This document shows, piece by piece, positions 286 through 49,252 of a DNA stretch of 64,000 nucleotides. Numbering within the stretch: the stretch's first letter is position 1; every line of letters begins with the position of its first letter. The position numbers were made by a program, and so were the translations under genes. The DNA comes from Phallusia mammillata. Taxonomy: Eukaryota. The DNA is taken from the NCBI GenBank assembly GCA_965637545.1, contig OZ281497.1:18848001-18912000 (forward strand), in the 5' to 3' direction. The notes beneath the pieces were generated by a model. The model was not told where the DNA came from, ran no database searches, and was given only the letters and a program-made list of their open reading frames with translations.

Positions 286-1754
286 TTAAAAGTAGTCGTC
301 GTCGCCGCCGCCGTTTGCGTCCCCACCAAAGTCATCCTGGTCATAAGCGTCAAAATCACCAAGGTTGTCAAATGCAAGGTCGTCACCGTAATCTAGGTCG
401 TCGAGATCGTCGTTGCAATACTGATCCATGGTGTCGGTATTAAAAAAACTCGCAAAATTGTCCTCATCCCCATCGCGCGGCGCTACGTCACAGTCGTCGC
501 TTTCGTAACGGTCTTCCTCTTCATCGAAAAACAACCTTTTCTCGTCTTCGCCAATGCTGGAAAGTATACAGAAACGTAATAATTTTTAAAAACAGGCGAA
601 TGAGGCCAGTTTGCAAGCTCAGAGAGGTCGTTTTCCAGTCACTTTTATAACAATTGATGCAAAGCATTCTTTCTTTAATGATAAAAAGAACTGCCCAAAT
701 AGATGTAAAAAGCGACATGTTTTATTGTTACAACGTTTTGGCAAATGCTCAAGCCATCATCAGTGATATTTGGGCCATTATTTTTATCATCAAATTTATG
801 AACAGATTTATATGTAGTGTTCCAAATTGACATGTAGTTTTAAATAAACATTTTTTTTCACTAAAAGATTTTACCTATCCTCGTCATCTGGATAATCATT
901 TTTCCAATGATCCTCATCATTGCTATCTTCATCCTCATCATAATAAGTTTGCTTTGTTATGTGCGACTCATAGCAAAGATTGAGATCTCTGTCAAACAGG
1001 CGGAACAAAATTACATTTATTGCTTTGGAATTAAAATTCGCTTAAAAGTGTTCATATACCTGCATGGTTGAACATAAAGGATATCCTTAACTGACCATGT
1101 GGGCTGAGTTCCTTGACAATAATATAGGTCATACACAAATTCATCATCTTCTCGTTTAGGTTCAGAAAGACAAAGTTTCTCTCTCAGCATTTGCACTGAG
1201 TTACAGAGGATATCTTCAGGCTTTATAGAGGAGTTGCACTTTTTAGTCTCTTGCTCTTCCACATCCAAGATTGGAGTGAAATACGTTGAAAGTTTCCGCG
1301 TGTCTGTGTGGATGGCCTCACATGGCTGGGACGGTGATTCTGTTGTTTTGTTTTCTGAAGTTTTAATTTTTGGGTGAGCACTAACAAATTCAGGGTTTCT
1401 GGATGAAACCCGCAACAGCTTGTATCTTGCACATTCATCTTGGTGCGAGTGATCAGCTGGGACACCAACCACTGATCTTTTGTGAGAAGTCAAGGGCCGT
1501 GTTTTGTAAATGGAGTTTAATTTGCTGTGCAAAACAATGGCATCTTTTACTTTATTTTTGACAGCCTCATCCATTTTGGCATTTAAGCCCACTGTGGTTG
1601 CGAATCTGAAAACATTTTCTTCGATTTGAATGATGTCAGCCATTCCACTGTTTCCACGGAAGTGCTCATCCTGCTTTATCCGCTTGCTTGCAAGAAGAAG
1701 TGCTTCCACTGGTTCCGCATGGCGCTTGCGCTTGACTCTTATCACTGTTGCCAT
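286..1754 (-). CDS. SLC7A6OS: SLC7A6OS / Iwr1-family RNA polymerase II nuclear localisation protein, 3 exons (1754-1060, 988-875, 556-286)
   Basis: N-terminus MATVIRVKRKR..EPVEALLL. The Iwr1-like block 'EFVYDLYY' and 'YYDEDEDSNDEDHWKNDYPDDED' spans exons 1-2, followed by an Asp-rich C-terminal exon ending DDDYF*. The GT-AG junctions keep frame (both phase 2). Confidence 0.85.
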
Positions 1755-3118
1755 TATAATATCATGTGCTCACCTATACTGCTTTTAACAATACTGCAAT
1801 ACACATAACTTAAAGGTTAAGACAATTGTTTTCCGACACCAACATCTTTTGTTGAGTGACCTGATCTGCAACTGACTGCACAACATGATAAGTGTACTAT
1901 TGAACCCCTTTAATTGTAAATGTATCTTTGCCCTGTCTTGTTGATTGCAAAGAAGTTGCAATTTTCCTGTTATAAACCAGAAAGGAAAAAAATCTTCATG
2001 CATCAATTATTAATGCTTCAAAAGCTGATTTCCCTTGAGACATATTGGATTGACACACAAATAAAATTATCAGCCTGTCTATCACGCCAGGTCACTTAAA
2101 AACACATAGCCTTTTTGACAGTAATTTAATGTTATCAGCCTCCATATATTTAAAAGAATGGCAACAATTTTATGATTTAGTTCATTTTTTTTCCATTTTG
2201 TTAATTACTTGAAAATTAGTTTCATATAACTTTTACCTAATTTTTTTAATTGTGTTGTGCCCCATAAATTTAACAACCTTCTTTAAACAATTAATACCAA
2301 CTTAGGTTTTGGACAATTGAAACAAGAAAAACGTAAAATTAAATGAGTTTCCTCAAAGAAGGCGTACCATGATAAAGTTTTGTAAATAAGCTTGAATTAA
2401 AACCATATCAAAAACAAAACAACTTGGTAACACACGATCAACAATCCTTGCCTGTTCCATGTTTATGCTGTAAACTACAGATAACCTATCAAGCCTCGAA
2501 ACTTATTTCGGTCTTCATTATTTTGCCGACAAATAAATTGGCTGTATTTGTTACGCGGGCAATCTTAGGAACCACGTGGGCTGAAATACCAATCAAAAAT
2601 AAACCAGTTACCTGAAAACCTTGCTTTCTAAGTGATTCACTTATTTCTTTTGGGGCCCAAACTGGAAAACTTTCGTAGTCTGTCGCAACATCAACGCAGT
2701 TTCTCATCGTCTCAGAAAGACGTTCCACAAACAGTATTCCGCCACTATTAACAAAGTTCCCGTACGACCTGCGAATCGGGTACTCGATCGCTCACATACA
2801 AACCATTAACGCTAGCTAGCGGAAAGAGTTTTGTTGCTGATGTTGGCCGTGTTTGCAACCAGTTGGTGAATCCAAACACGCTAAAATTTTGGGTGGTAAT
2901 GCATAAATAATTAATAATCTAAATTTAATATTTTTGGTATAAAGGACATAAAAATATCAAGGAATAGTAGTTTTTTTGTCAGTTCCTTGTAACTTGTATT
3001 CAATGAAGCGTAACGCATCATAACAAAGGTTGAGATCAGCTGATTTGCAGATTTTTATGCAGGTTGTTGAAAATCTGGAAGTTATAAACGCGAAAGTCGA
3101 ACTGGTTATACTTTATAG

Positions 3119-5150
<2,032 letters not shown>

Positions 5151-6332
5151 AAGCAGCTTTTCTAACTTGGTCCAAGAATATTTTGGAAAAAAAACTAAAT
5201 GCATTTGATTTCCTCCAAAGTTCTATGTTAGTTCAGTGAACAAAAAATGCTGGTCCTTAACTGTCAGTGTTTTTCCTCCTAATGATCCCAACTGAGTACT
5301 GCCAACCTGTCCAGAGTCAAAGGCATTATTTTGTGTTTATGGTTGTACTATTTCTGTTACTCTTTGTTAAGTTGTATCATGAATAATGGCACTTTGAAAG
5401 GTTTGGGGAATTTACTTTTTCTGAACTTACACAAAAAGGGTTGGACAGCAACGATTTTCAGATGCAGACCTCTATTACAAATATCAATCAGAGTTTGTTT
5501 TATTTTTTGCACTAAATGTATCATGTGAATACAAAACTGTGGAGATACATGAATATGTAACCTTGTTGTTGAACCTAAAATACTCTCTTGAGCTGATCTA
5601 TTTGGATGGATATAATTTATTTCCATATACAATTCAACAAAAAACATGTCGCATATGAAATTATCAAAATCGTGAGATTAGGCAAATCACTCAGACATCT
5701 ATGAACAGATAACACCTACTGTAAGTACATAATACAAGATTCGGTCATATATATGAAAATACTTGTAGAGCCCAACTGCATTTTTTTAAATCTGAACTTC
5801 GAAAAATTGTGTCACAGTTCAAAATTTGTTAGCGAATTATACAGTACCACTCAGTAGTGAATAACTACTACCATGCATGGCAAGCATGTCTTCACTGTTT
5901 CTAGTTTCAATATCCCTAAACAAAAATACAAGCGCAGATCGGTGCAAATAAAAGCCACAACAAAAAAGTGCATAGTTGACTGCACACAATAATACAGGTT
6001 TGCTAAATGTTTCCCTGGAATTTACAGCATATTCAGTAACAACCATTGGTCAAAATATAAAAATATTATGCAACAATCTCCACAATTGAACACTATGCTT
6101 CCAGTCTAGTAACCGTCCATATTAAAGTATTTTACTAAACTATACTTAATATAAATCATGGAATGTTCTACAGTATAATAAGGTTTTGAAAGACCACACC
6201 ACAAAACTATTACACATAATTATATCCAAAGCAAAATACAGAGAAACTGCACATTATCTTTATGGCTCTTAAAACATGTTGAACATTGGGATACAAGTCT
6301 TCACTGAAGAAAAACGTTTACAAGCACCAGAA

Positions 6333-9300
6333 CTACTTTTTCCAACGAAACATAGTTGGGCTAGGAGGAGCTTTAAACTTAATTTGGTCCCATGTGGTTA
6401 GTATCTTTTTGCGAGCATCATCAGCACCAGATGTTACAACTTGGCCTAGCGGCAAACCTCCAATGCTGCCAGAGCCACGATGGAACATTCTCGGGCTATA
6501 ATAAGTATACAAAAAAGTTAGAAATATATGAGTTTAGATGCATCCAAATTATTTTTGTGACTATTTAAATACCCAAGAACAGCAACAACAACAGCATGCA
6601 AAATCTATAAATAATAGGTTATTTGTAACTAAATCAAGGGTACCCAATATTTTTACACATGTACCCAGACTCTAAAATTACACTCCAGTAAATATACTGA
6701 CAACTTTAATACAAAGTTACCACTTGAATTTAGTGCATAATCAAAACATACACATTGAGTTGGAAAACAAAACTTGAATGACAAACTTAAAACTTGGTGC
6801 TGTACAAATTCATATTACATATACTTACAACATCAAGTGCAATCTTCATGAAATAGCAAGACTTAAAAGAGCCTCGTAAATTTTTTCTTGGTTTGTTTAT
6901 GGCTTGCAGAATCAACACTGCATGCAAGTGGACGACAACATAAGTACAAGGACAACAACAAACATGAAATAATTTACAGATGTGTTAATTACCTGCCCTC
7001 AGAAACAATGCTACCCCTTTCAAGTTTTTGTTCCACCTCATTAAGCAATGATGACACTTCATTCTGGACAACAAAACGTGTTGTTTGTTGCGATATATAC
7101 AGATATGTAAAACTGCAAACTTACAGAACGTTCTGGATGCATGGTTTCAATATCCAAAAGCAGACACTTAAGAGCTGGTAAGAATGATCCATGCAGCAAA
7201 TTTGTTGGTATGACTTTGATCGTGAAGTCAAGTACAATATATTTTAAAGTGATATAAATATAACAGACAATTTGCCAACTTCTACACATTAATTGTGCAA
7301 GTTACCTGATTAATACCTACCATGCACCAAAAACGTTTACCAAAAAGAGAAACAAGTGTAAATCTTCCTTGATTTGTTTAAATTGTTTTTACTTAAAAAT
7401 AACAAAAGCCGACAACCTAAAGCATGTATTTGAAAGGATACAGCAGCATGAAAGGTTGGTGTATGTCTCAAGCAGCAAAAGGGCAATTTCAGATCGTTTT
7501 GAGCGATCTTTCTGCTGGCTGTTGCTGGCTGCAATTACCACAAGATGGGGCAAGAGAACTGTAGGACAACAAACAAAATTTCAAATTATTCCTTTAACAT
7601 TTAAAAACAAACAATGTTTGTCTTACATTCATCCCTGAATTTGGGATGAGCAGTTGGGGCAATTTTACAAGCAGTTGTTACAAGTTGAAGTTGCACCGAG
7701 TGCAATCCAAGCAGTGTGCCGTCATGTGAGTGCTCATGGTAACCACTGGTACTTGCTGATACTACATCAATCATTTGGGTTATGACACGCTCAACAGCAT
7801 CGGCTGTTACTGAAGGATTTTCAACCACTGATGCAAAAGCAGGAATTGTTGCCACTCGAACTTCTCTGTAAATTCAAAATTATATTTTTATTTTTTACCA
7901 AAGCTAGTTCAAACTTCAAATATCAGCATTTTTAACCATGTGCAAATAAATGTAGTTTTTTTTTCAGCTAAAATAAATATACAACCAGCTATTATCAATT
8001 TACAGTTTATTCAAAGGCATAGATTAACTAACATGGTTTCATCTGTTGACAATGTAATAAGTGCTGGTAGTATCCGCGATGACAAAACATGAGCTTTTAC
8101 ATCAGCAGTTGTCATCACAATGCTAAGTTGTGCCGAAGCTGCTCTTACAAGAGGTGACTCATGCATCACCCCAGACCACAACACTTGCACAATGGCATCG
8201 TGATGTTGAGGATTTGATCTAAAACAAAAAAATAAATCTTAAAACATCATTGGATATTTTTTGGAATTTTGAATAAACCGTGGTAAAAAAATCTAAAAAA
8301 ACAACACAGAATTTGGAAGATTCAAACTTAGAATGGAAACTTACAGGAAAACTCATATTTTGTATTACAGGTTCATTAAATAAGGTTTTTGGTAAGTAAT
8401 TCACTCTAAGACATAAAAGGGAACTCAATTATCGTCGACAATTTCTTATGATGAATAATGCTTATTGAAGAAAGCTGGGTGTATTGACGTCAAATTACAT
8501 CACAAGGTGCATGACAAATTCTTAGTTTGTTCATTATGTCTGAACTTTGCTTGACAGGAGGAAAGGAAGGATTGAAATGGAATGGATTATTCACACACAC
8601 AGGGCTACCAAAATACTCCTGATCTTATCATCAGAACAAAGGTAGCAGTACTTTTGGTTCTTATCAAGCCATTAGCTAAAGGCAAATGCCCAAAAGTCTT
8701 TTGAATAGGGAATTTATTGCAGAAAATTATGATTTTTGGATATTGTGCAGTGTAATTTTCACCAATTTATTTTCCGTTAGTAAGCTGTACAGGTTGAGAA
8801 TGTCTGGAATAAAATTTAGTGTTCTTATCCTGGTAAATCTTCTACACTGCACAATATTTATAAGTGCTTGTCCAAGCAAATGTGTCTGTGCTGGGCAACT
8901 TGTTAACTGCAATAATGCTGACTTATTTGATATTCCTAGCAATGTACCAAGGGATACCAAAGGCTTCACAATGGCATTCAACAAGTAAGTCTATAGCAGG
9001 GATGGGCAACCTGCGGCCTGCGGCCCTTCATTAAAGCTTGTGCGGCCCACAGTGACGCTTGGATTTTACTGGCAAAGTACTGGCAAACGAGTCCAATTAT
9101 TACATATTTTTGAGCGGATTAATGCGTCTGATGCTAGGTTTCAGCGATCTGGCAAAATGTGGCTAGAATCAAATACAAATTATACTTGTAGTTAAGTTTT
9201 TTTGGTACGAAACAAAGCAAAATCACTTTGTGTGATGAACATGTGTGGCCCTCGATCCAATTTTGACATTTATAATTGGCCCTACAGTAACAAAGGTTGC

Positions 9301-12300
9301 CCACCCCTGGTCTATAGCATGACTCCCTCTATAAAAAGTTATGCTAACTTTGTTTGCGATTAAGTGCTTATTTCTTTGGTTCGCTGTGATAAAGTTTTCA
9401 CATTATAGTTGAAATTTTTCCAAACCTAAGTTGACATATTGCATATTTGCAGAATAACTAGACTGGAAATCACCAATGGAGAATATGTGGCATCAATATT
9501 AAACTCAGGAGATTGTGAAAACAGTCCCTTTATGAGCATTACAAGTATTGATCTTTCAAATAACGTGATCAGTGAAATACACAGCATGCTGTTATTTCTT
9601 GCTTGTCACCTAGAAGATCTTACTTTGGACAACAACTGGATTACAGAATTAGTCAGTCCACAAAATGATACTTTTGGACCATTTGAAATGCTACACTCAC
9701 TGCGACGGCTTTCCCTACACAACAATCGAATATTTCATGAGTTGAGAGGGATGAATTTCAAGTCTTTGACCTTATTGAAAAAACTCGATCTCAGCATGAA
9801 TATGATTCCTTCAGTGGCTAACAGTGCATTCACAAATACTCCACACCTTACAAAGATAAACCTGAGTCACAATAGAATATCATTTTTGGAGTCTGGCTGC
9901 TTTAATAATCTATTGCTGCTTAAAACTTTGGACCTCTCCCACAACAATTTGCAAGTCTTGAGCACAAGTGTATATAACAACCAGCTTTCTGGACTGGGTA
10001 GAGTCAATGTATTGGATTTTTCACACAATAAGATACACAAAATGGATGACAACCTGCTTATTAACATGGTGTATTTGCAGTTAGTGAATATATCCCATAA
10101 CAGAGTAACCACTCCACAAGCGTTTGTCAGTAATGCTTCATTTGTTGTCGATACCCGAAACAATCCAGGTAACTCATCATGTCCAGCATGGAAAAGTCTT
10201 GTATTGGAACAAAGCAGAGCAAGACTGGTCTGCCAAGAGGTGGAAGGTCATTATGTGGCAAAGGTTATAGGTCAGGCTGGTACCATGTGCACAGTAAGCA
10301 GCGAGTGTACATGCACAAGTTTGCATGACTTAAAAGTTCTCTGTGGCTTTGCGGAAGAAGAAAACCACATTTCAATTCAAACCATAGTCATTATAACTGT
10401 TGTTTCTGCAATTGTTCTTATCGGCTTAATCCTTACAATCATTATGATATATAGAGTAAAAAGAATGCGAGGGATGGATTTGCAAAAAAAAATGAGGAAT
10501 GAAAACAACCAGCAAAGTCAAGGCTCAGGAGTTTCTGAATGGAGGAGGCAAACCTTACGGCGCATACGACGGCCAATTCAGAGAAGCGTCCATGCACCAC
10601 CTATCAGCAATGTTGAGAGTCTGTCTATTCGACACATCTACTACAGTATAAAGTATGATGAAGAACAAAACAGCTATTCTTCCGCCCAAACCAATGAACG
10701 AATCTACAGTGAGATTAAGCAGGTTTTGAGAGGGGAAAGCCAGTATGGACACAGAAGCATAACTGAAAAAGATGAATATATAGAAGTTCAGGACATATCG
10801 ACACACACAAGTTCACCACAAAGTGAAGCTACTTTAGGTGCAGATGATTTTGTGATAAGAGGACAATATTGCATTCCTTTGGGTCAAACAGTGACCAAAT
10901 CACCAGTTTTGGAAAAATCAAGTCCCAGTGTGGCAAAACCTGTATTAAGTGATACAACACCCAATTCAAGTGGTACTGTTCCCCGACCTCATTTTTTGCC
11001 TTTGATGCCTACTACTTTTCGCCAAAAAACAGGCAATAGTGTTTATGAGCAGCCAATGGCACACAATCGAGCATCGTATTTTGAAATAAGTCCTTAATCC
11101 TTTTATTAAGTTTATGCTCTGAACTGAATTGGTTTACAAAGTGAATGTAGAAGCATTCTTTAGACTTTTGTCGCCTTCAACTTCTTCATTTATGAGCCGC
11201 AGTACAAATGTTCAGCTCGATAAATTTTTCAATTCACAATATTTAACCCTTATACTTAGTCTTCCAAAGTTTCCAACAACTTGGTTGAAGACATGTTAGT
11301 GAATGTATTTCTTTTTTTGCCTTCATACAGTTCTGTTGTCCTATCGTTTAGCCATACTGATTTGATTAATGTTAAAATATATATTGTTTGTTTCCTTTTA
11401 TTTTGTGTGTATTTGTGAGCCTGCAAAAACTTCTTTTGATATTTTTGTGAAGTACCTTTGTTTGCATTTTCCCTCATGTCAATGTGTTTATACCTTACCT
11501 TTTAGAAAAATATGTTTCTCACATGGTGACATAACTAAGAAACGATTTTCTTTTCTTCAGTTACCATTAAACATAAAGGTAAAAAAGTTTACAAACTGTA
11601 CTGTATATAAACTGTACATAAATTGTCCCACTTCTGGTATATTGTTTCTAACATGAAAACCTTATTATTATGACATTCTGTTTTGGGCATTTCACTCCAA
11701 ATTTGGCAAGCGTAAATATATTCTTCTCTGAATTTTTCGACAGTTTGAAAGAAATGCAGAAAAATTAGGTTCACAGTTCTAGTAGATTACAAAAAAGTGG
11801 TGATATTTGAAAATTTTTGCTCACCTTAATGAAGTCAATGTTGATAACATAGCTGTCATTGAAAGCTCCGATTTTGACAAGGATACAATGGATTGTAACA
11901 AAAACTCATTCAATGTTGGCACTGACTGTACCAAAATCATAAACAAACATTAAAGGCCGAATATTTATTCAATCTTGAGTAAGATATGTTGTACTTACTT
12001 CACTATTTAGAGATGAAATAGTTGCTACATAAACTGGCAATACACATGTAGTATGGTTTTCTGGACACTCTTCCAGAAATGAGACGAACCTTTTCCATAC
12101 CTTAGTTGACATCAATAGTAAATTAAAGTGATGAAGCATCTGCTTAAACCGTTTAAAATATTGACTGTACCTTGTTTTCATAGAAAATACTTCCAAAAAT
12201 ATTTTGAAAACTTAAAATGAAATCACACAAACATTTGACAATTGGTTGTGAAGAAGGATCAGCAAATTTGCAAATCTTTAAAAATCTTGGAATGCTGAAA

Positions 12301-30426: not shown

Positions 30427-33196
30427 TTATCGACTGGCACTTGCACGATGGCCAGCTGGTGGCGCCTTTACGCCCAAGTACCGCCCTTTGTTCTCATACA
30501 ACACTGGAGGCTCGTACGACATATTAAAAGTCTTAACATGATCAATGGAGTCCACTGAAGCTGAGTCTGTCGCAAGATCACTCTGTGGAGTATTTGGCTG
30601 TGGCGCAGCCTCTTCTGCCAATGCTTTGAGAAATTGCTCTTCGGTTTCCCTCTGCCTTCGTCGAATAGATCTTTCTGTGATTTCAGTTCGGCGCAGTCGG
30701 TCTGCTAAATCAGCGATGTCAAAAAAGAAGTCACGCGAAGGCACGGTGTCTTTTGTAAATGTATGGAGTGATGTGAGTGTTCCCTTATTTTGACTGTTTG
30801 TTTGAAGAACAGGTAGATTCACAACACCGACGTGAAGATCAGCCACACGTTTATCGTACCGCGGTTTAGTTTGGATTTTAACCGGAGTCATTTGAGTTGT
30901 GCTGAAATTTTTTTCAATCTTTTTAACCTCGTCATTGCTTTTATTTTTTTCATTTGCTGGAAATAATCTAACTTTATGCGGCTTTTCTAAATCGAGTTTT
31001 CTGTACTCGACCCGCGGTAGATCTTCATCAGTGGAAGTGTCTGGGGAAAATGGAATCGCTCTAATTTCGTCGTCCAAATCCGATTCACTGGACGTCTCGG
31101 TAGCTTCTGGAATCGTTTCAAATGTTGACGCGGTGCCAGGTTTGGCAAACGACTTAGATGACTTGAGCTCCCGAGATCTACGTTTATTTATTGTCACGGA
31201 AATTTCTGGGTCTTTCTGCATGAACAAATTCTTGAGATCAACATACAAATAAGTTTCAATAGAAAATGTGTATATTTTGCTAAATTATGCTTCTGTACGA
31301 TTTCTGTAGAGCGATTCTTAGGGTGTTGTGTAACGGAATGTTGTCACATACAATGTGTTGTCGTATAAGTTATTATAAAAGATAAAAAGATAAATAGTTA
31401 TACGTTGGGTAAAATGAAATTTACAAGCAAGTCAACATTGCTTACGTCCGGTTGTTCTATGTCGGTTTTTGATTCCAATGCAGTGGGCGCTGTTGTGCTT
31501 CGTAACCGTGCACCAACATTGTCGCTAATATCTCCATCGTAAACCTTTCTCTGAACTTCACGCATGCTAAGATAAGGGGCGCGCTCATGTACCAATGCCA
31601 ACTTGTACACGTCGGTTGCAACAGAAGGACTCGTTTCTCTGCAGCAGAAAGTCACCAATGGTTACTAATCACAAACTTAACCTCAAAATCCTGTATGACT
31701 TAAACTTTGGTAAACCATTTGAAATCACACTTACATGCATCGGCGCTGATGGGACCTTTGTGACCTTGTTCTTGCACAGTCAGGGCAGGATTCGGGTCCG
31801 AGAATTTCACAGTACTCGCGAGCCATCACTGTGTTGGGATTCGTCAAAATTCGGCTTAACGATCTGCAACAAGTTTAAAACAATTGCAATTGTCGATGTG
31901 CTTTTAGAACCATGATTTAATAGAAAATAGGTTTTCGGTTGTTACCTTCCTTCTATTTGTATATCTGGAAAATCAGAGCAGCGCACACATCTATCCGCGT
32001 TGTGAATCGGGTAAGAATCTTGAGACTTGGTGGATGATTTAATGGACTCCCAAGTTCTTGGTATCTACGCCAGTTAAAAAATCCTTATTGTTTAAGAACA
32101 AGAAGCGCAAATATGGTATACTAGTATATGTATGTTAATGATTTTATAACAGCTATAATAGATATAGTCGTAGACACTAACCTCGATCTTGCTGCTTGAA
32201 TATTTCGTTGCTGTAGCATCCCCGAACATTGTTTGTGTTGAAGCTTGCTTACTGCATAACAAACCATATTTATCCTACTTCATCGCCAAAGGAACAAAGC
32301 GAACGTATTTTTACCTCATCTCCTTTGCCGATACGTGTTTCACAAGATGTTGCGCCAAACGTGGTGTTGGCAAATCTCCACGAAGTGACAAGGCCGGAGA
32401 TGTCGGCTCTTGAGAAAGCCTGCGCAGATCCACAAACTGACCCGGTTTCACCTTTCTTCTTCCGCTCTGCAGGAGTAATAGCGAGCTGCCAAACGACTGA
32501 CGGATGAGGTCGGATTCTGGCGACTGCGCCAACGCTATCACATCTTCCGGCGAAAGTTGGCTGCCTGCAAATATCAACGTAAAAGCAATCCCACGCACCC
32601 CAAAGTTACATACACTAAAGTTTGTGTATAAGTTGGACACACAAAAGCAAAAGCTCATTATCGTGTTCGTGCCATTTTGTAAGTAGCCTACCCAGTGGTG
32701 GGATTCAACTGTTTTGTCACCCGCGGTTCTATCACAAAAGTCACGTTTTAGGCGGTTCTGTTACAAAAAGTCCATTGACATTAACCAGTAATTCTGACCG
32801 GTTCGCTGATCTCATAAAATTTCGTGAGGCGGTTCTATAGAACCGGTGCGAACCGGCTGAATCCCACCACGGAGCCTATACCCAAACTCAAATTGTCAAA
32901 CTTTTTCACACTTTTAGTATGATATATTTTTGTTTTTAGTGCGAACTAGGACCGTTTAAACATTACGTAAAGTTTTTTTTTACAAACCATCGTGATCCCT
33001 TACTCGGCATTGAACTGTGATAGGAAACGCATCCTGTCTGTTATTTACCTCTTGTGCTGGGGCGCGATTGTATTTTAACCGACTTCGGAGTAGATCCTCG
33101 CCTTCCACCTTGCCTGCTAAACGTTCGGTTCGCAGTAAAGTTGTATTGGAACTCGCCCCCCGGAAAGTAAGACTTTGTCTTCGTTCCGCTAACCAT
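30427..33196 (-). CDS. Uncharacterised 7-exon gene, ~565 aa (33196-33049, 32564-32315, 32251-32182, 32064-31946, 31863-31735, 31638-31446, 31215-30427)
   Basis: All six GT-AG junctions conserve phase (1,2,0,2,2,0), giving 1698 nt with no internal stop. I recognised no domain. The start codon and the last acceptor are the least certain parts. Confidence 0.75.
32693..32872. mobile_element. 180-bp MITE, second copy of the 20855-21034 family, in intron 1 of the uncharacterised gene
   Basis: CAGTGGTGGGATTCA ... GAATCCCACCACGG. The internal sequence is collinear with the 20855 copy. Flanks are AGCCTACC / AGCCTA(TA)CC. Confidence 0.85.
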
Positions 33197-34116: not shown

Positions 34117-37100
34117 TCATTCCTTGTGTTCAACAAACCCCCGTAGCTTGCGTTTATGCTCGGGGTTGATGGGAACGGCGTCAAGGTGGGAGCCAAACGT
34201 GTTAGTGATGCGATAAATCGCGTTTTTGCATTCGTTCCTCAAGCCACGAATTTCTCGCAATAGGGAAAGTACTGCTTGCGATGAAGAAGCTACTGGCAGT
34301 TTGTTGTATTTTTCCAGGGCCTGTGTAGAAATGTGCGAGGTTAAAAAAAATTGGCTGTAGAATGCTTCGAATGTGCAAGCCGATGTTTGACATTTTTTTT
34401 AATCAATTTGGTTCAAAATAGTTTAGGCACGATTTACTAGAGCTGGAAGCTGTGCAACAAGAATACTGGATGACCAGTATCATGTATTGTAGTAGTGTGT
34501 ACCCGTGTAACATTTTACCGTAACTTATGCAAAGGACATTATCACATCAATTGCAAAGTAAAAATGCCAAAAACAGTCGCTTACAGTGTGGAGATCCAGA
34601 AGCACTGCTATAATCTCATGAAGTCGGCGCTGCACCACGCCAAAATTGTCCTCGGTAAATGAGGCTTCCACCACAATCGAAATGCTCTGCAGTGCCCATT
34701 TACACACGCATCGCCCGGAAAACAAGTTGGCAGCGCTACGGTCTGGCATCTAAAACACGAGCAGAGCTTTTTAAGGCGAACATAGGAAATGGCCAGTCAC
34801 GATTTGCAGTGCTTAGCTGGAAATTGATTTGAAATAGCTTTTTTACGATTCTGCGCTACGATGTTCACCTTTTTAATTAAGTAAGAAACGATGGAGAACT
34901 TCTTGGCCAATTTCTCGATCCTTGCAAAAAGGCCGCTCATTTGTGTATTTAACTGGTGCTGGTCGACCTGAGAACATATGTGATTAACGATTACTTAATC
35001 GTACACTTACACGGGTTTACAAACATCATTAGAAAAACGTTTGATCTCAAAAACTTACAATCTTCCAAACACAGTAGACTAAAAAAAGTAGTTTTTTTCG
35101 TAATATACAGTAACATCGTATAAACGGAATTTGTGTAATACCCTCATTAGCCAATGAAACCGGGCCTACATTAAATACGTTTGTTGTAATCGATATATAC
35201 TTTCTCACACAATGTGCGGCAAAATGAAAGCTTGGTTCACCTTTTCGTTATAACCATCTGCATTTTGTGTCACTGGTGAATTGCTGAAGCTCCCCTAAAA
35301 GGTAAAAACGGATTTGTTAAGTTATCATTTCCAAAGAAAGGCATTGAATCATATAACAAGCGAGGTACCTTATACAGCTGTCGTGTCCACAACTTTGGCG
35401 TCGGGATAACCAGATTTGGTCCACTGCGATAAGGCGAATTTACGTTGCCCGAGTTTGTTGTGGTGGCGTCCAAAGAAGATACCTTTGAAGTAGGAACATT
35501 TATGGCTTTGCAAAATGGAAACAAATATTTATTATCCAAGTCAGAGTTTTTTTGATCGAGTCCACGGGATTAAAGATTTTTTATGAGTCTGGGACCACCA
35601 CCGATCGAAAAATACTTTCGTACATTTTTATTATCTTACATTTTAAAAGTGCACTAATCGTTACGCCCAAACAGAAGTATTTGAAAACTTTAAAAAGTTG
35701 AAAAACACGCGGTTGATTCGTTGCAATCTATACTTACATCGAAGTATGACATGTTTGGAGAATTGCTTGCATCAGATTGCAATGGACGTCGACGCAACGT
35801 GGAAACAGATAAAAATGGAGATTTTTCATCTAATAGAAAACAAAATAGATGTTGGTAAACACACAACAAAGCAAGAACACGTCACCACATAAAAGGTTAA
35901 ATTAAAACTAATTTAGCACAACATTGGTTCAACTCACACTCTAACTGTCATTTCAAGAATTGAGGTTTTCAAAAAGTCACATAGGCATACCTGTGCTAGA
36001 CTGAGATGAGGTTGATGATTTTGAGGAAAGGCGAGAAATGCCCTTCTGGTCATTATCAAAGAGACCTAAAGGACAAAAAAATAAGTAAGTTTGATTTACA
36101 CTACAGTTTTGTAGTAGTGGCAATTTTTTTAAGAAGACTGAATGGTTGAAAAACATACTTGAATGTTTAAGATTGTGGTCGGTCAAGGCATTGGTCAAGT
36201 TTTTGATACAAAGCAAACACTCATCGGCAATCACATTCCACTTTGAGGACCTGTTACCAACACCTCCCCTTTCCAAAGAAAATATTTGTTTTCGAACATT
36301 TGCTGAGTGGCAAGTGACATGACTGAGATGCTGGAATGCCAAATGCTGGCAAAATAAAAATCACATAAAACATGAAAAGTTTTTTTGCAGCCAGCATGAT
36401 GCGATGTGCCCAAAAATAAACTGGACATCGCATCAAATGGCATTACATTGTACGTGACAGATAAATCAATTAATCTTCTGATGCAACATCCTGTCTTGGT
36501 GGATAATCAAGCCCTAAGTTGGTATCAGTACGTGTCACCATCTGTCAGGCGTGTCTTGTCTTACATTTATTTTCAGTTTTTTTGTGAATTGTCATGTATG
36601 TAAACTTTTATTGAGAAGATTCTTCCTGTAGAATTCTTCCTGTTTTTGTTTGTCAAAGAAATCAAGATATGTTTAAGAAGAATTTTATCTGATGATTCAT
36701 GTGAAATGGTCTGCATATGGAGTTATAAGATACTGCCTCTATTATTTCTAGGATTTGGGGTTGTCAAACCAAAACGTGAGATTGTTTTATCAAACAGTAG
36801 ATAAACAGCCTTGAACTAGTTTTTGGTCTTCTATATCTTTTGTTTGACAAATATTGTTTCCTTTTTAGAATGCAACCTTACAAAAAGTTGTGGTGCTGGC
36901 CATATAACAAAGGAATTGTGTACTCAAAGAAGATGTTGTTACAATCCCACTAATATAAAAAACGATAATTGCTTTGCTTGGGTTCTGCCAGGTTTGTGAA
37001 CACCATTAGTATGTATTTAAATTCGTAGACTATGAAGTCAAGTTTACATTTTAGGGATATGATTATTTAAAGTATACATTTAATTTGTGGTTAAGAAGAA

Positions 37101-40100
37101 AAGCTTAACTGTAAGATGTTTTCAGAGACAGTCAAACGGAAAAGACATATTGTTTTTTGCTTGACAGACAATAAACATCATGTGTTACAAATACAAACTT
37201 ATTTGTCTTAACTTAAACGTAGACAGGAAAAAAGACAACTTTGTTGCAAAGAAATAGTAATAAAAGGTGGTGAAGTCTCCAAATCAGCCATTTTTGTGTC
37301 TAATTCAGAACCTCCGCCACCCCTTCCCTTGGTTGTACATTCACCAGAAATATTTACTGAAATATTGCCATCGGATGCCCTTGAAATTAATCCAAGCCTA
37401 GAGAGACAACTAAACAAGCTGAAAGATGAACATGCGAGTCTTACCAAAGCACAGGCCATACATATTGCAAACTCGGTAACACTATGTGAATATATTTAAA
37501 AAAACATTTATGTAACCTTTGCTGTGTAATGTTTAGTTGGAAAGATGGCTTCGAGACAAAGGACTTGAAGGTGAAGGTGTCAATTGGGACTTCAACAAAA
37601 ATGGAATTTTCAATGCATATGTCAAGGTCAGACTAGTTATAGCGTACTGAATGTTGCCCTAACTATGCTGTAGAGGTTTTTTAATGCCCATGTATTTGAG
37701 AAAAATACTTCACGTTACATAGTTGCTTCATCTGATAAAAAACAGAGTTTTATTACTGTTTGTATCATCAGTTTCCAAAATAACTGGTAAGATTTGCAAA
37801 CAATTTTGTTCATTCCTTCCTTTTTTGTGTACTTTACCCCTGTCTTTTTATTAAAAAAAGTATCTTCTGACAGAGAGACAGGTCAACATTTTTTGAACCT
37901 GTGAAGTTCAGAAGTGGCACAGTAATCGCAGTGGACAAAAAGAACCAGATCGATAAACTTAAGATTGGCCTTCTGGTATTTGTAGAATATACAACACTTT
38001 CCACAATACTTCAAGGGTAAGTGGAGAAGTAAAATCGTAATGCACCATTTACAAGTTTGTTGTCAACAGGACCAAAGAGGGTGCCCTCCAATGTACAGCA
38101 AACAATGAGTCTATTGTCTCAGTTAATGCATATACCGAGGAGGGTAATGACGTTTCAATTTCACTATCTTTTAATCAACCTATCAAGAAAAATGACAGAA
38201 AGTATGATACTGTGTCTACTCCCACATATACTCATATAACTAAATCCCTTGTTTGACAGCTTAACTTGTGAGTATTTAAATGAGACCTCACACCACTGGT
38301 TTTCTACTGGATGCATCACAACTGCTTCTGGATCCGATTCAGTTACTTGCTTTTGCAATCACACAACCAAGTTTGCAATTTTGTTTCAAGTCACACCACA
38401 TTCGTTCATGATTCCCAAGTTTCACCAAAATGTTATACAGGTAAAAAAAATGCTGATAAGACCATACTGTTCACTAAGATTTTATGAAAAGAGAAGGGTG
38501 GCCTTTCTAAAGTAAAAGTATGTGACCATCTGGTATTTTAAAAGTTTCACTGCTTTAAAATTCTATTAGGTACTGATGTGTAACAGACATTAAAAAATGC
38601 AAATTTTATCGGGCCAAAATAGTTTAATAAAAATTTATTTTTGACTAATATTTGTATTTCACAAACTTCCGAATATAATTTTTTGGAATTTACAGATTCT
38701 TGAATATGTCATGGAGGGATTGTCATTTGTCTGTTTACTAGTTACTTTTCTAAGTCTGATTCTTGTGCTTCGTCGAAGATCCAAAACTGTGTCTACTAGC
38801 AGTGCCAAAGCAAAAGAAAGAACAATTGTCCACACTAACTTTGTGGCAGCATTGGGCTCTTTTCACATGATTAGACTTCTCAGTGAAGCAGCATATGGGA
38901 TCAGCAGTTTATGTGGAGCTATTGTGTTTCTTAGGTGAGTTTAGAAAAGACATTAAGCTTTTTCTTCCGCATTTTCATGAAATTTATGAACACCTTTTTC
39001 AGTCACTATTTCATGTTGGCAAGTGGAATGTGGATGTTAATTGAGGGCATCGTTCTTTATGTTAACTTGGTCATAAAAAGCATGAAATCCACAAGACTGG
39101 GCTGGATGAAATTTGCAGCTGGATGGGGAATTCCTGGTCTTATCGTACTGGTTTCTTCAGGTATAGATCATTTTATTTCCTTTATTTAATGACTTTAGAT
39201 CCATTGACTTCTTTACATATTTTAAAGCAATTGGATTTTCGAACGACAGTTATGTTGAAAAACAGCATGATCTTCAGTGTCCATCTGGTCAGACTAGAGT
39301 TGAAATTAGTCCTCTAAGAAAGGTAAACAACCACACAGGAGAAGATTTAACTGACTTCACAAACTAACCACTAACTCTTTGGCATAGAACACAACACAAG
39401 AGTACTGCTGGTTGAGTATCTCAAGCAATATGATATGGTCAGCACTGGGGCCACTCATATTCATATTTGCAATCAACTTCTTTATTCTGATGCACACAGT
39501 TTCTTTTGTGTTGCGACTCAGTCTTAAAACAGACACAATGAAGCCGGCTAGTCAAAAAAGTCAAAACTTTAAGCATTTATGGTAAGTGCAATGAAATCAC
39601 AGCAAAAATTTGCCTGCAATTTCTGTGTATCCAGGAATACAACTAAGGGAATACTGGTGTTGTTTCCAATTCTTGGGGTACCTTGGCTAATTGGTTTTCT
39701 TGTCAATCTTGAAAACCAGACTGCAAATATTGCATTTCAATACATACATGTGATCCTGAATGGTCTACAAGGAGTATTTATTTTTATTCTTTACACTGCT
39801 GTAAACAAAGAGGTATTGCATGATACAATACACATCTTGAAATGAGTTTTCAGTCATATAATTCTTGCAGGTTCGTGAAATTGCCTATCGAGTTATCAAC
39901 AACAGATGGCAGCAGCACAAAATATCATCTTCAAGATCTGCAAACAATTCCACACTAACACCGAAAGAAAGATTTAAAAAAAGTATTACCAGCATCATGG
40001 GTACACCACTCCACAGGAAAAAGTCATAGTATGTTACGTGTTTAACCACACTTCTTCTATACCATAATAGAACTGCAGCAACATACATGCCTTAAAAGAG

Positions 40101-43100
40101 CACTTTAAAAAAAATGTTTTTTAGCAACTTTCAACGTGGGGGAAGCAATAGCCATTACAGCTTCCAGTCCAACACACAACATCGACAAAGTTCTGGTTCC
40201 AGCTCTGTGACCAGCACAATGTTACGAATGAAAAGGTAAATAGAAATACATGCAGTTTTTGGGTCATTAGTGAAAACACATTTGGTAATACAGGGTGTAT
40301 GAATTGCACAACAAATTCGACCCTGTTTAAAACACTACAATTTTTAAAAACATGAAAATGTGCATTAAACTATGATGTTGGCCACAATAATTGAGTAAAA
40401 AGTCACATGTGTCCTACTGGTCACATGTTTGTCACCCCAGTTTAGGTCATTACACCCAGAATTACAATTTAGTTTTTAACTTCAAATTTATTACAGTTAC
40501 AGAAAATATTCAACTGGTTCAATAGACCGGTCACGATTGGCAGTGCCACCAATTGGCCAAATTGGACCTGGATATAGTGGAAGTTTGCCCCGAGGATGGG
40601 GATATCGCACAACACCACAAGTAACCCGAACACCAAGTATCAAATCTCTTCACTCAGACCACAGTGGTAGTCCCAAGATTTGTTCAATCTGTGGGACTTC
40701 AAGAAAAACATGTCGCCACAATTCAGGCTCTATGACAAAACTGAACTGGGAGGCTTCAGACCAAGTTCAATCCTACTATGAATTTCAGTCAACAATTGGG
40801 AGAGAACTGCCAACTCTAAATTCACGTTGGCATCGCATGACTGCAGAAGAGTTCAAGCGATTTTCCGCTATTCCTGAAGAGAAACGTAGAAGTGGTGTGA
40901 ACTCTTTTTACCTGGAGGGTAATGAAGGAATGAGCAGTACACAGATGGCTTGGGATAAGAAAGCAAAAACACTGGAACGCACAAACCTCTCTTCACACAG
41001 TAGTTCTATGAGACAGTACAGTATTGCAGTTGATATCCACTCCCCAACACACAAAAAAGAGGAATCACAACTTTTACCCTCACCGTCTATCAAGACCAAA
41101 ACACCAGAGACAAATAAAAAACTATCAGAAACCATAACAACCAATCGCCCATTAACTCCCAAAAAGCTAAAGGCAAAATCTATCAAGACCTTTGAAATTG
41201 GCCGTTCCCTTGGCAAACGCAGTGGTAAAAAGGGTGATCCAAACCAAGCAAAGTTGAGTATGCCCACACCAAAACATTCCAAAAGAAAAAGTGAGCGAAT
41301 GTCAGCTTATAGTGAAAAACTTATTAAGGCAGTGGAAAAATGGAAGCAAGAGGAAGAACGGATGAAAATAAATGTTGTGACATGAAATCATGTTTACTGT
41401 GCATTTGAATCTGCTTTTTTGTCAGATGCTGCAAAATGTTGTTTTTTCTCCAAATGTTCCATCTAAGTTTCAAAAATCAAAATAACCAAAAAAGATGCTA
41501 AGATTGACTTATTACAAATTGCCTGGCACTTCTAGTGTTAAAACACCCAATTGTCACTGTACCCTGCCTGTATGACTAGTTCAAATGTATAAAATATGTA
41601 TCAAACTCAGGCAACAAATACCTGTACAAGTGGGGGCTGTTTCCCATTCAAATTGGCAGTGAGGATCTTGGTTGCATCCTCTGGAAACACTGACTCGAGC
41701 AAGAAATTATATCGCTGCAAGAATAGATACAATATATTTGCTGAATGTTTTAAGGAAAAAAAATGTGTTGTGTAAATACCTTCGTGTTGCACAGGTTGAA
41801 TAAATTCCAAGACACATCATGAAAAACCAATAGTAAAGTTCCACAAAGAAGCAATGTCCAAAGGATTGGTAGAATTGCAAATATGTTCATAACACTTATC
41901 ACATGGTAATCACTAAAAGTGTCATAAAATAACAGTATTGACTTAATCACAGTTAATTGCATTTAATTAAACTTACCATGTTTTAAGGCCAAGAAAACCT
42001 GCTATTAAATCTCTGGGCACAAATCCCAAGAAGTAATAAAACATTACAAAATTGCGAAGAAGTCTTGTGCATGAAATTGTGGCATTCTTTACAATTGTTG
42101 AAAAGTTGCATTTCAAATACAGTAGCCTTGTTTGCTGAAGTAATGAAAAAAAGTTGAAACTAGCAAGAAGCATATGCGCACAAATGAATTGATAAACATA
42201 CTTGAACTAATGGAAAACTCAAGCAATATTTTTGTTCTTTTTCATTGGCTATGAAATTGACAGTCCCAACAAAGCCACTGAACAGAAGCAGCAACAACCA
42301 GTGCTCATTGAAGCATCTTGTAGAAAAACAAAACACTTTAAAATTATTCAAAAATTTTATCAAAGAAAAAAGATAATTTTGGTCATTTGCAACTACCTAA
42401 AAATGCCCATGCCCTTTAAAACTTTTGTGTGTATTTTCACAAAATAAACAAATATTTTTAGTGAGTCAGTGATCACAATCTACAATTAAAAAAGCCAGAC
42501 AAACGACATCCATCCTTAGAACAATTTTACTGCATTGTTCACGGGTACAACTAAAGTAAGAGACCGCCTAAGACTTAACCACATATGTTAATATACATAC
42601 ATTTCTCCAGTTGATGCTTGAGCAGAGCAGTCAGTAAGAGGTGAAGAATACTGACTTGGTACCAACAAAGACACAAAGGTAAAAATGACAATAGCCAGCA
42701 AACTATGGCACAAGACGTACATCACATGTTTTCCATGGAAACATTTTTTAAGTGTTTCATAATGAGAAACTTCTACCTTGGGAACAACTTAAAAAAGGAA
42801 GTGGTAAAAGTAAGGCATTTAAAAAAATTACAGAAAGCAATTTACCTGAGAAGTGGTTGGCAAACAATGCAATGTAGGTTGCACTTACAAAAGCCAAAGT
42901 GAATATTACTAACCACACATGAAATGACAATAAGCGTAGAACATAATCTGGAATTTAAGGAGATTATTAAAAACACAGAAAGTGACTGGATATAGGATGT
43001 CATGAGAAAACTTTAAGTTTATGAGTACTTTTTAAAAAACGCAATCTCACTTTCGTAATAATAGTCTGTCTACCTCTTCTTTACAAAATAAAAACAAAAC

Positions 43101-45286: not shown

Positions 45287-48200
45287 TTATATGACAGTTT
45301 CCTTTTCTTGATCTTCTTCTTTCTCTTGACTGGTGGTTGATAAAGCTTGTAATTCTGGTGACGAGTTGACCTTTTCCTCGTCGTCAAGTTGTTTCTTCTT
45401 CTCTTCTCCAATTACAAAACGATATAATGCTATTATGAAGCAGAGTGACAATATTTTTACAGCAACAAGCAATCCACCAAAACTTGTGCGAAAACTGTCA
45501 GCATCATACAGCTGCAAATATTTGGAACATAAGTGAGTCAAAATTGTGCAAACAGTTTTGCATGTAGGTGCAAGAAGTTTAAAATTTATTCAAAATAACC
45601 TCATCAATGTTTCACTCTCTACTTAGCCTGTTACTAATTCTTAATGTGTGTGGGGTTTCTCTATGTGACACTTACTCACCCGACAATATGATCGTTCACT
45701 GCAAGTTTGCTGCGTCCATAACAAACAAGTTTGGTCAATCGCATAGCCAAACACAATAGGAGCAGGTATCCAACCGAGCAAACGATAAACAAAAAATGCC
45801 ACACTAAGTCCAAAAGACTTCTCTTTTGGCCCCAGGGTTCTAAACAAAATTGTTTTAATAAGTTGTCTGCAAAAGTTAAGCGCACTGTGAAATAGTTACC
45901 TCATTACCAACATCATTAAAGGAGTGGCAGCTAAACCGGCAACGAAATTTGTGAGCGATGTGACGCCAATTACAACCCACGCCAGCCCTTCACACTTGCT
46001 TTCGTAACATTTGCCGACCGTTACAACTTGCTCGTGAGGAGATTGTGCAACGCATGAACATAAGGTGTAGTTCTGGACACACGGATATTATTGAATATAT
46101 ATGAGCAAACTAATTCAGATAACTTACTTGAGCATTGCTGCTTTCGTCGTAAACGGAATCACTACAGCCAGCTATACATGGCGATTGGTATGTTATTTGA
46201 CCTGGTCCGCACACTGGCGTGTAAACATCAGGATTGCAATTGCAAGCAGAATTACATTCAGCTGTGGTTGTACCTTTTGAGGTTTCATAATCACTGCCGT
46301 ACATATTGTTTTTATTAAAACGTTGTTGTTTCTCTCTGTCAAAAACTTACCTATTTGGATACGGCACGGTCAAACCTGCGAAGTCGTTGGGGCCACATCC
46401 AATCACTATTAGAGCAGCGAAAGCGACCAGGGTAACTACGTACGTTGCAAGAACCAACCGTATGTTAGCCATCACTCCCAACTTGAACCGCTTAATTGCT
46501 AGTGCTCCCAACATTGTACCAACCACCAGAAAGGGGAAATTGACTGCCCCTAAAATAAGAGAAAAATTTAAATCTTTCGGATTCGAAGATGTCGAAGACC
46601 GAGAGACGTACCCACTAGAAAGCTTGCTTCAGCGGCCGTCTTACCGAATCCCACTTCCAGATATTTCACCATGAAAGTTACAACGCCAGATATCTTAAAG
46701 CATTCGCAGATCCACGATCCAACTAACAGAAGATATTTCGGATTGTATAGCAACTTTTTTGTTGCGATGAGAAACCCACTGCATTTGAAAAAAATAATTT
46801 TAACAATTTAAAATTATAGTGTTAAAGTAATGAGAGTAGTACTGGGAATTGGGAGTAGTTATTTGTTTGCATTTGGTTCCGAGTCTTTTAAGTCCGTATG
46901 CACAAGGTTAAAAAGCAATAATACACATTAACATAAAGTTTTTTAAACGTGTTATGTTTTATTACACACCTCCAGTCATTTACAGCCTGATCTTGCTTGT
47001 AGCTATCTTTAAAATCTATTTCACCTTCTTGTATTTCCTCGTCAGAAAGACCCTTCTACAGAAAACAGTGTTATCTTTGTTGAATTGCTGCTTAACCAAA
47101 GAGGATTATGAAAGTTCGAAATATTTAAAATTGTAAAGGCTTTTAAAACCTCTTGTTTCTCTGTTTCTTTGGTCATGGTTTTCGGGTAAAACCAAACGGG
47201 CAAACTGGAGACGAGCATCGCCGCGGCAGCGATATAGAACCCGAGCCACCAAGCTCCGACCCAACCTGGATGGTGGGGATCAATCGTGATCGAATCTTGG
47301 CAAAAAATTAAAATTAACAAATGTGAGAGTTACTGCTACAAATTTGAAATGTGTTGATGGTTGTGACCAGCACGTCATTGCGAATGGCCTACAAATGAAT
47401 AAATTGTTTTATTGACGTTTTTTAGAACGCCTTGAAGCGAACTCAGCGAATTTGATTTGATTGCTAATTTAAGTTTCAGTAAAACTGCTTGGATTTGTTT
47501 AAAAAGGTTGTGAACATTCACTGAAACCTGCTCGGTTTTCGGTTTCTCTTGCTCAAGGCATGTTTTTTTTCAATGGAAAACCCTACAAGTCATGAAACAC
47601 TATCTTAAACGTTGTTACTCTCTGCGAAGTAAAGAATGACGGTAATAAGACACAAAATGGTGGTAAAACAAACCCGTTTACCTTCATTCACCCATCCAAT
47701 ATCAACATATATCTTAAGAACAGCGGCCCCTCCAACGAAGCCTACAATCGGCCCCACCAATGCGATGGTCTGTATAATTCCTGAAATTTAACACGTTAAA
47801 TCGCGTCACATGAAGGGTTGAAAACGTTCAATATGTGTAAAACATAAGTTATAACATCCTTCGCGGTGTGTATTAACACAGTTTTGCAAGCTTACTCAGC
47901 ATGTTGTCTCACGGCTGGCTTGAACGAAACCATGACACAGCACTTTGAGTATGAAAGCCTACACTTCGTTTTGTTTTTTTACTTCAACTCAATGTGAATT
48001 AAGTTTTAAAAGCTTTTTGCATTTCTAACTTGCATTTTTGTCTGATCATGAATGTGTGAACGTAGTTGTTTCGACAGCATATTATTTATACTAGCAATAA
48101 AACCTTTTTGGCCAATAAAATTCTAACACCTGTCACGTATATATATTTTATATATATGGCCTGCATTGAAAGTTTTATTGTCGACAAATTGTTATGATAC

Positions 48201-49252
48201 GCCTGCGGTTGTTTTGCAAAAACCTTACCAATATAAGCTGCGGCATTGTGTGATGACGCGTGGTCGTCAACGTACGCAAAACCTAATGGAAAAAGCGGTG
48301 CGTCCCCAACCCCAGCGAGCATCACTCCAATTACTATTAAAATGTACAAGTTTGACGAGGATGCGGCGTCGGTATCGTCAGCATCACATTTTTCCTCAGT
48401 TATCGCAGTGGTAGGAGAACTAAAACAAAGTTTGAAACTCGTTACCTTACATTCGGAGTTCACTGGATGATGATACAGATTATATATAATGAAGCTGCTT
48501 GTTGGTGAAAAACCGAATTATATTTGAATTGGAAGTCATTAAAAATGTGCTCACAACCACGAGACTAAGCTATATGATAACTTACTGCAAATCGCATGTA
48601 ATCGATTGGCGTTGATCGGAACCTTGGTAACTTGTATTAATGGATATGTCATCAAACTTGTAGCGACCGCCAATGAACTGCGGTAATCCACATAACAAAT
48701 ACCCCGCCGTTATCACCAAACATCCTATGCCGATCATTCGAGGTCTAAATAACACGAAAAGTTAACAAGCACACGGTAAAAGAACGCCTGCTTCAGTTGC
48801 ATGTGAAGTGGGACTGACCTGTTAAAGCGTTGTCCGAAATACCCGACAAACAACATTACGCTGAGATTACCTATTTGCGCACTGGTCGCAATTAGGGCAG
48901 AGGTCGTGCTGGAAAGTTGGAACCTTCGTTCGATTGTTGTCAACACACTTTTCGTGTACGCACCCGCAAATATCTAAAAAATAACATTAAACTGGAGATA
49001 AATGTATTTGATATTGCTTATGCTTCGTGCATGTATATTTGTGCACATATATAAGCCGTCAGTATGGTGAACCGATTGTTAAAAACATACTGCCAAACAA
49101 AACCCCACTTTTGCAGCAAAATTTAAACAAATTTAAAGCACGATAAAGTAGGATCTAAATCCAAAGGTTAAAAAATTTACCTTTACGAATCCAAGCAATC
49201 CAACCCATACTGCAAATGTCCGGACAGAAACGCAACAACTTCTAAATTTCAT
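45287..49252 (-). CDS. SLCO: OATP/SLCO organic anion transporting polypeptide, paralogue A
   Basis: MKFRSCCVSVRTFAVWVG, TTIERRFQLSSTTSALIA, PLFPLGFAYVDD, WVGAWWLGF, Kazal-like CNSACNCNPDVYTPVCG, LLGWIPAPIVFGYAID; ends EKETVI*. Confidence 0.92.

Follow-up and report, generated by a model that had tools for sequence, protein, structure and literature searches.

The DNA analysed here is a stretch of 64,000 nucleotides of the ascidian Phallusia mammillata (contig OZ281497.1, positions 18,848,001 to 18,912,000 of the forward strand), referred to below as the window and numbered from its own first letter. On its plus strand lies a predicted adhesion G protein-coupled receptor (GPCR) gene of 16 exons, running from a signal-peptide exon to the stop codon, in which the second exon (36869-36991) encodes a candidate P-type trefoil domain and is followed by 14 further exons. 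The whole gene is nested in an intron of NDC1 (Ndc1_Nup; region 36346-42316), which is encoded on the opposite strand. The same nesting was found in Ciona intestinalis (locus L001, 4022-17916) and Clavelina lepadiformis (locus L011, 117-8267), therefore the arrangement predates the split of the ascidian orders to which these species belong. Exon borders were read from the sequence and then compared exon by exon with orthologues, and domain and fold searches were performed on single exons.

Exon 2 had been singled out in a previous, sequence-only reading as a trefoil-like domain with a short first loop at the N-terminus of an adhesion GPCR. The interval proposed there proved to be one exact exon of 123 nt, bounded by the acceptor tttttag/AA and the donor CCAG/gtttgt and in phase 1 at both ends; translation between these borders reproduced the quoted peptide and its cysteine pattern. 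Positions 36871-36990 (plus strand) encode CNLTKSCGAGHITKELCTQRRCCYNPTNIKNDNCFAWVLP, with six cysteines spaced C-x5-C-x9-C-x4-CC-x10-C-F, and from Cys II to Cys VI this is the spacing of the trefoil family (x9, x4, CC, x10). The Pfam profile Trefoil (PF00088, gathering cut-off 21 bits) matched the exon 2 peptide with 33.9 bits (E 2.8e-8, profile positions 11-41 of 43), and the orthologous exons of Ciona, Styela and Clavelina also scored above the cut-off (25.8, 30.6 and 27.9 bits). When a hidden Markov model (HMM) of the family was run over the six frames of the window a single site was obtained at 86.8 bits, the runner-up reaching 9.6 bits; this lone site and the Pfam E value place the match beyond chance. 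A sequence search of PDB with the exon 2 peptide matched porcine spasmolytic polypeptide (TFF2) and TFF3, and a profile built from four orthologous exons retrieved porcine TFF2 (E 6e-9) followed by TFF3, GAA, TFF1, SI and MGAM.

The fold was addressed with two AlphaFold2 models of the module, one built from the single sequence and the other from a six-sequence alignment, both with a mean pLDDT of 76. In Foldseek the top ranks for these models were TFF3, TFF2 and TFF1 (probability 0.95-0.77, TMq 0.61-0.66, rmsd 2.3-2.7 A). In a search independent of Foldseek (VIA, 48,161 chains), ranks 1 and 2 went to MGAM (Z 3.2) and GAA (Z 2.8), in both cases to the trefoil domain. The profile and structure-prediction checks suggested by the sequence-only reading thus came out in its favor, the nearest structures being the trefoils of TFF1-3, GAA and MGAM. 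On profile and model grounds, exon 2 is considered to encode a genuine, short-looped P-type trefoil module.

The attachment of this module to a receptor is reproduced in other ascidians. A HMMER search of the full library with exon 9 of the gene returned seven proteins in total, two of them full-length: XP_076813181.1 of Clavelina lepadiformis (P0002; 1020 aa, LOC143459788) and XP_039259706.2 of Styela clava (P0003; 1025 aa, LOC120336161), both named 'uncharacterized protein'. These orthologues, 37-58% identical, share the architecture and a conserved tail motif. The Pfam scan detected Trefoil, GPS and 7tm_2 in both, which bears out the proposed N-terminal position of the trefoil in an adhesion GPCR; the precomputed Pfam lists of the database give GPS and 7tm_2 alone for the same proteins, with Trefoil absent. 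Exon by exon, the gene of the window is 45-71% identical to those of Ciona, Clavelina and Styela. The Ciona intestinalis orthologue is LOC108949702 (P0013), whose RefSeq model is truncated at the N-terminus and starts inside the GAIN domain. The trefoil exon is present at this locus (L001, 8236-8376), some 1.7 kb ahead of the model. It lies within one of two short upstream 'genes' that are called separately (173 aa at 7923-8950, and 143 aa; region 7923-10001), and these two probably hold the missing 5' exons of LOC108949702.

A trefoil exon upstream of the GAIN exons was read in the loci of Ciona (L001), Styela (L002) and Clavelina (L011) as well as in two more (L008 and L009), and it is in phase 1-1 in every one of the six species including that of the window. 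Comparison of the six species shows no change in the six cysteines, nor in an Arg located three residues ahead of the CC pair. The architecture is therewith present in at least six sea-squirt-type genomes spanning three ascidian orders and, by sequence comparison, the gene family has so far been seen in such genomes only. When the full-length Clavelina protein was used in a word search on a candidate list limited to 8000, the matches listed were three orthologues from tunicates ahead of generic adhesion GPCRs of 23-27% identity. None of the latter is annotated with PF00088, but with a list of this size absence outside tunicates is not established. A word search with the trefoil region of Styela, in which two candidates were scored and the query itself was returned, is uninformative on other taxa.

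The Clavelina locus deserves separate mention. Its trefoil exon (L011, 3250-3390) combines a tandem acceptor (ttagcag) with a GC donor (ACAG/gcaaga), and the RefSeq isoforms X1 and X2, which both include the exon, differ by one Ala in agreement with the tandem acceptor. Gene models that have tandem-acceptor isoforms and GC donors usually rest on transcript evidence, and the same may be presumed for these two. In the Clavelina ENA model CAK8681288.1 (P0010) the leader is joined straight to exon 3, and the gene is split in two. Many gene predictors reject GC donors, and this donor better explains why the model skips the trefoil exon; the model was therefore rejected as evidence of exon skipping.

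In Phallusia the trefoil exon is preceded by exon 1 (36706-36775), recognised by sequence reading, with an A at -3 and a G at +4 of the start codon, a hydrophobic leader that starts MVCIWSYKILPLLFLGFGVV and is a predicted signal peptide, and a phase 1 end at the donor AAAC/gtgaga. The leader is similar to those of Styela and Clavelina. Exons 1, 2 and 3 connect in frame by splice phase. Exon 3 (37309-37475), supported by the sequence and by an RNA contig (X5, 37318-37475), carries a proline-rich linker (EPPPPLPL) and the start of the GAIN region. This region continues over exon 4 (37537-37626; tblastn match to residues 126-157 of the Clavelina protein and a junction in X5), exon 5 (37674-37786), exon 6 (37882-38016), where a tblastn match to Clavelina residues 158-328 starts, and exon 7 (38070-38201; donor AA/gtatga followed by a 58-nt intron). 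Of the sixteen exons the least well supported is exon 5, which was placed by phase only and has no separate tblastn match to the orthologues. About 250 residues separate the linker from the GPS and can be aligned to the orthologues; Pfam GAIN gave no match there, and the UniRef name of a Clavelina fragment is 'GAIN-B domain-containing'. The order given by the sequence-only reading, in which the trefoil directly follows the leader and precedes the proline-rich linker, the GAIN region and the GPS, agrees with exons 1, 3 and 8.

Exon 8 (38260-38440) contains the GPS and the putative tethered agonist or Stachel (CFCNHT/TKFAILFQV), with 37.5 bits on Pfam GPS (cut-off 22.5), directly ahead of the first transmembrane helix (TM1). 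Its PDB matches are the GPS regions of ADGRG1, ADGRD1, ADGRG6 and ADGRL3, and the Stachel aligns to TNFAILMQV of ADGRD1. The string CNHTTKF is invariant across four ascidians, including His at -2 and Thr at +1 of the GPS. TM1-TM2 are encoded by exon 9 (38696-38934), which was recognised via the orthologues only (58% identity to Clavelina residues 328-404 and 55% to Styela). Three exons matched Pfam 7tm_2 (cut-off 20.6 bits), covering profile positions 81-250: exon 10 (39003-39160; TM3-TM4, 47 bits, best PDB matches ADGRL3 and ADGRD1), exon 12 (39388-39581; end of the second extracellular loop, ECL2, with YCW, and TM5, 35.8 bits) and exon 13 (39635-39812; TM6-TM7, 33.3 bits, best PDB match ADGRD1 with E 2.9e-8). 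Exon 11 (39228-39322), placed by phase, extends ECL2 by about 31 residues, among them an additional Cys (..LQCP..) that precedes the usual YCW, and this long loop is kept in the three orthologues of Clavelina, Styela and Ciona. With a GPS, a 7tm_2 core and a Stachel recognised in its sequence, the encoded protein is classed as an adhesion GPCR.

A subfamily could not be named. The ectodomain of ADGRD1 has a pentraxin/laminin-G-type domain, and ADGRL receptors have RBL, olfactomedin and HormR domains. The Pfam scan detected no pentraxin/laminin-G-like domain, the mark of ADGRD, in any exon, and the receptor exons contain no pentraxin, RBL or olfactomedin domain. Since the best solved structures for the 7TM exons are split (ADGRD1 for TM6-7, ADGRL3 for TM3-4), these hallmark domains are absent and the word search listed no orthologue outside tunicates, the receptor is not assignable to ADGRD or ADGRL. 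The trefoil is, as far as the profiles used can recognise, the sole binding-type domain of the predicted extracellular part.

The cytoplasmic tail begins in exon 14 (39871-40022), which was set by phase fit and agreement with the orthologues and ends at the weak donor AA/gtcata, followed by a Ser-rich exon 15 (40125-40235) and by the long exon 16 (40497-41385), an open reading frame (ORF) that aligns to the Clavelina, Styela and Ciona proteins and carries the stop codon. The donor 40022/gtcata, which is not backed by any RNA contig, is the sole one in phase with exon 15. It sits two codons before an in-frame stop (40027-40029), and read-through at this point would yield a receptor whose tail is short and lacks the conserved motif. 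The more obvious donor (40000/gt) is in the wrong phase, which led to the idea of a separate downstream gene or operon at 40497-41385; this was dropped, as the orthologues carry the tail in one protein and the donor at 40022 restores the phase. At about 40810-40910, in exon 16, a motif of ~28 residues (RW.RMTAEEFKRFS.IPEEKRRSG.NSF) is invariant with respect to Ciona, Clavelina and Styela within an otherwise divergent tail; no Pfam family matched the tail, motif included.

RNA runs covering the window are kept as contigs (X1, X5 and X7). They do contain RNA, since the flanking minus-strand exons of NDC1 are clearly spliced (CT..AC joints 41714/41780, 41912/41977 and 42134/42202). For the receptor, contig X5 supports the junction of exons 3 and 4, its loose end TTGGAAAG at 37475 matching the start of exon 4 at 37537, and the joint of exons 15 and 16 (40235 to 40497, with GT..AG ends). 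In contig X7 (40600-41459) a minus-strand joint with CT..AC ends connects 41005 to 41398 within the last coding exon of the receptor, suggesting either transcription in antisense or an alternative exon of NDC1 that extends over the receptor tail. Elsewhere in the window, the minus strand encodes at 45600-49000 an organic-anion transporter (SLCO/OATP) with a Kazal-like loop (Pfam OATP 48.4 bits, Kazal_2 26 bits), and at 30427-31248 an open frame of 273 aa, rich in Ser, Asp and Lys, with no Pfam family.

Several observations weigh against the reading of the gene as a trefoil-bearing adhesion GPCR. Loop 1 of the module, between Cys I and Cys II, has five residues in Phallusia, Ciona, Styela and the loci L008 and L009, and seven in Clavelina, where canonical trefoils have about 9-10; it is shorter than canonical, as had been pointed out from the sequence, and the Pfam alignment starts only at Cys II (profile position 11-12). 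The absolute structural scores are weak (Foldseek E 0.3-2, VIA Z about 3), as expected for a domain of just 40 residues, and the ranking alone is informative. Neither the junction of exons 1 and 2 nor that of exons 2 and 3 was found in any RNA contig of this species, and the lone contig over exon 2 (X1, 36654-36900) is unspliced, like all X1 contigs in this intron; the inclusion of exon 2 in the receptor mRNA is thus inferred from splice phase, conservation and the orthologue models. One further locus, L010, comes from the species that supplied P0001. Upstream of its GAIN exons lie 9.4 kb of sequence (1-9400) before the contig ends, and within them neither a trefoil exon nor any counterpart of residues 1-160 of the Clavelina protein P0002 was detected; as no 5' exon at all turned up before the contig end, loss of the exon and mere distance are not distinguishable at this locus. 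Lastly, position -1 of the GPS is Thr, invariant in four ascidians, where Leu is usual, and autoproteolysis is therefore not assured.

The explanation held to be quite probable is that the NDC1 intron houses a 16-exon gene for a trefoil-tipped adhesion GPCR that works by the generic mechanism of these receptors. Its product would consist of a signal peptide, the trefoil, a proline-rich linker, the GAIN/GPS region, a 7TM domain that resembles those of ADGRD1 and ADGRL3, and a long tail that is itself conserved. The trefoil may serve as a partner-binding tip on a proline-rich stalk, holding an extracellular partner, while the GAIN domain would bury a tethered agonist (TKFAILF) similar to that of ADGRD1; pulling or displacing the N-terminal fragment would then expose the agonist to the 7TM domain and start G-protein signaling. 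The module probably arrived by exon shuffling, as suggested by a symmetric phase 1-1 exon that sits directly after the leader exon.

Some of the competing explanations concern what the trefoil holds. In the crystal structure of TFF3 with a disaccharide, Asp20 and Trp47 are the only side chains that contact GlcNAc-alpha-1,4-Gal, and binding is lost in the mutants D20A and W47A (PMC7221086). These residues map immediately before Cys II (TFF3 Asp20, TFF1 Asn14) and immediately before Cys VI (TFF3 Trp47, TFF1 Trp41). The first position is occupied by Ser in the window and by Gly, Leu, Pro, Pro and Asn in the other species, Asn being found in L009 only. At the second, Asn in the window is followed by Asn, Thr, Asn, Arg and Gln, so that Trp is replaced in six of the six species. 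As both positions are replaced, the sugar site of the TFF type is not conserved. This counts against the mucus- or glycan-sensing role that had been read into the sequence, in which the trefoil would be a TFF-like lectin that binds mucin O-glycans and turns the receptor into a sensor of mucus or glycans of the filter-feeding apparatus. The fold and HMM family are indeed those of the TFF lectins, and the ectodomain offers no candidate binding module besides the trefoil, but both ligand-contact side chains are replaced in the window by others, and TFF3 lacking either is inactive (PMC7221086). The known relatives offer a further objection. For GH31 enzymes and ZP proteins, no lectin activity of the trefoil domain is known, and the lectin proposal is regarded as unlikely. 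The fold could nevertheless bind another sugar or a protein. In a more speculative and quite doubtful variant, the trefoil would have its own specificity for glycans or mucins, unlike that of vertebrate TFFs, and the mucus net of the endostyle, pharynx or gut would be sensed mechano-chemically by the receptor: mucus held by the trefoil would pull off the N-terminal fragment and expose the TKFAILF agonist.

The TFF sugar contacts are lost, yet the disulfide frame is invariant and so is the Arg ahead of the CC pair. This also suits a trefoil-derived fold with no carbohydrate role, namely a structural cap or protein-binding knot that might stabilise or shield the GAIN domain or bind a protein partner. 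In sequence the module stands equally near to the trefoils of TFFs and to that of GAA, which is not known as a lectin. However, the proline-rich linker between module and GAIN suggests a projecting rather than a GAIN-packed module, and the present results do not separate a cap from another glycan specificity; such a role is possible, though on balance not favored. A different proposal concerns the exon rather than its ligand. Skipping of a phase 1-1 exon keeps the frame, hence receptors with and without the trefoil could coexist and the domain be a regulated option. Phase symmetry in all six species and the leader-to-exon 3 joint of CAK8681288.1 speak for such a cassette, but the GC donor of the Clavelina exon explains that joint better and both RefSeq isoforms of the same gene include the trefoil, which renders a cassette improbable. 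That exon 2 lies outside the receptor transcript altogether, as a chance ORF or part of another gene, is very hard to sustain: it would agree with the want of spliced RNA over exons 1-3 in this species, but conflicts with the Pfam E value, with canonical splice sites in matching phase, with the presence of this exon at the corresponding position of five further genomes, every cysteine being invariant, and with the two independent full-length RefSeq models that include it. The trefoil-tipped receptor with a generic activation mechanism remains the preferred reading.

The two halves of this predicted receptor have relatives in well-studied proteins. With TFF1-3 and porcine spasmolytic polypeptide (PF00088) the module shares the spacing of Cys II-VI, a CG..(I/V)(T/S)...C..R.CC(F/Y) core and the predicted fold. 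The domains of TFFs are each encoded by a single symmetric exon, as in the window. It differs from them in a loop 1 of 5 residues instead of 9-10, in the replaced Asp/Asn and Trp contacts, and in its tether to a membrane receptor in place of a secreted peptide. A parallel in protein layout is provided by the GH31 glucosidases (GAA, MGAM and SI) and by ZP1 and ZP4, in which a single trefoil lies near the N-terminus of a large unrelated protein, likewise a case of domain shuffling; the GAA trefoil ITQEQCEARGCCY resembles the ascidian ITQTQCEQRNCCY. In the ascidian protein, unlike these, the partner is a GAIN-7TM receptor and not an enzyme or a ZP polymer module. From the receptor side, ADGRD1 (GPR133) and ADGRL3 are alike in the GPS, the tethered agonist (TKFAILFQV here, TNFAILMQV in ADGRD1) and the 7tm_2 core, whereas the receptor of the window has a trefoil only, Thr instead of Leu at GPS position -1, and a long lineage-specific ECL2 and tail.

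Of 24 unclassified adhesion GPCRs of Ciona, 21 were described with the GPS as sole N-terminal domain and no vertebrate orthologue (Kamesh et al., 2008; PMC2396169), and a trefoil is never mentioned in that survey of Ciona GPCRs (PMC2396169). The annotated Ciona orthologue, which shows GPS and 7tm_2 only, resembles these 'Unclassified Adhesion' receptors but differs in that its gene has a trefoil exon, located in the separately called upstream gene; therefore at least one 'GPS-only' receptor has a real N-terminal domain. In Ciona the trefoil had been hidden by truncated gene models and weak domain scores. Two annotation errors are flagged in this context, the truncated Ciona RefSeq model and the Clavelina ENA model that skips the exon with the GC donor.

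Adhesion GPCRs are largely defined by their ectodomain modules; the lists for vertebrate receptors, and the surveys of Ciona and amphioxus GPCRs that were searched, include no trefoil. No human adhesion GPCR is known to carry a trefoil domain, and no paper linking this domain to the adhesion GPCR architecture was found in the literature searched. Within that literature, the trefoil is an N-terminal module type not previously noted in adhesion GPCRs and conserved in ascidians. Were the mucus-net variant true, this would be the first trefoil domain wired directly to G-protein signaling. The trefoil-headed receptor adds a domain type to the repertoire of adhesion GPCRs, and as a naturally occurring link between a trefoil fold and a signaling receptor it could help to ask which ligands trefoils recognise without the sugar contacts of TFFs.

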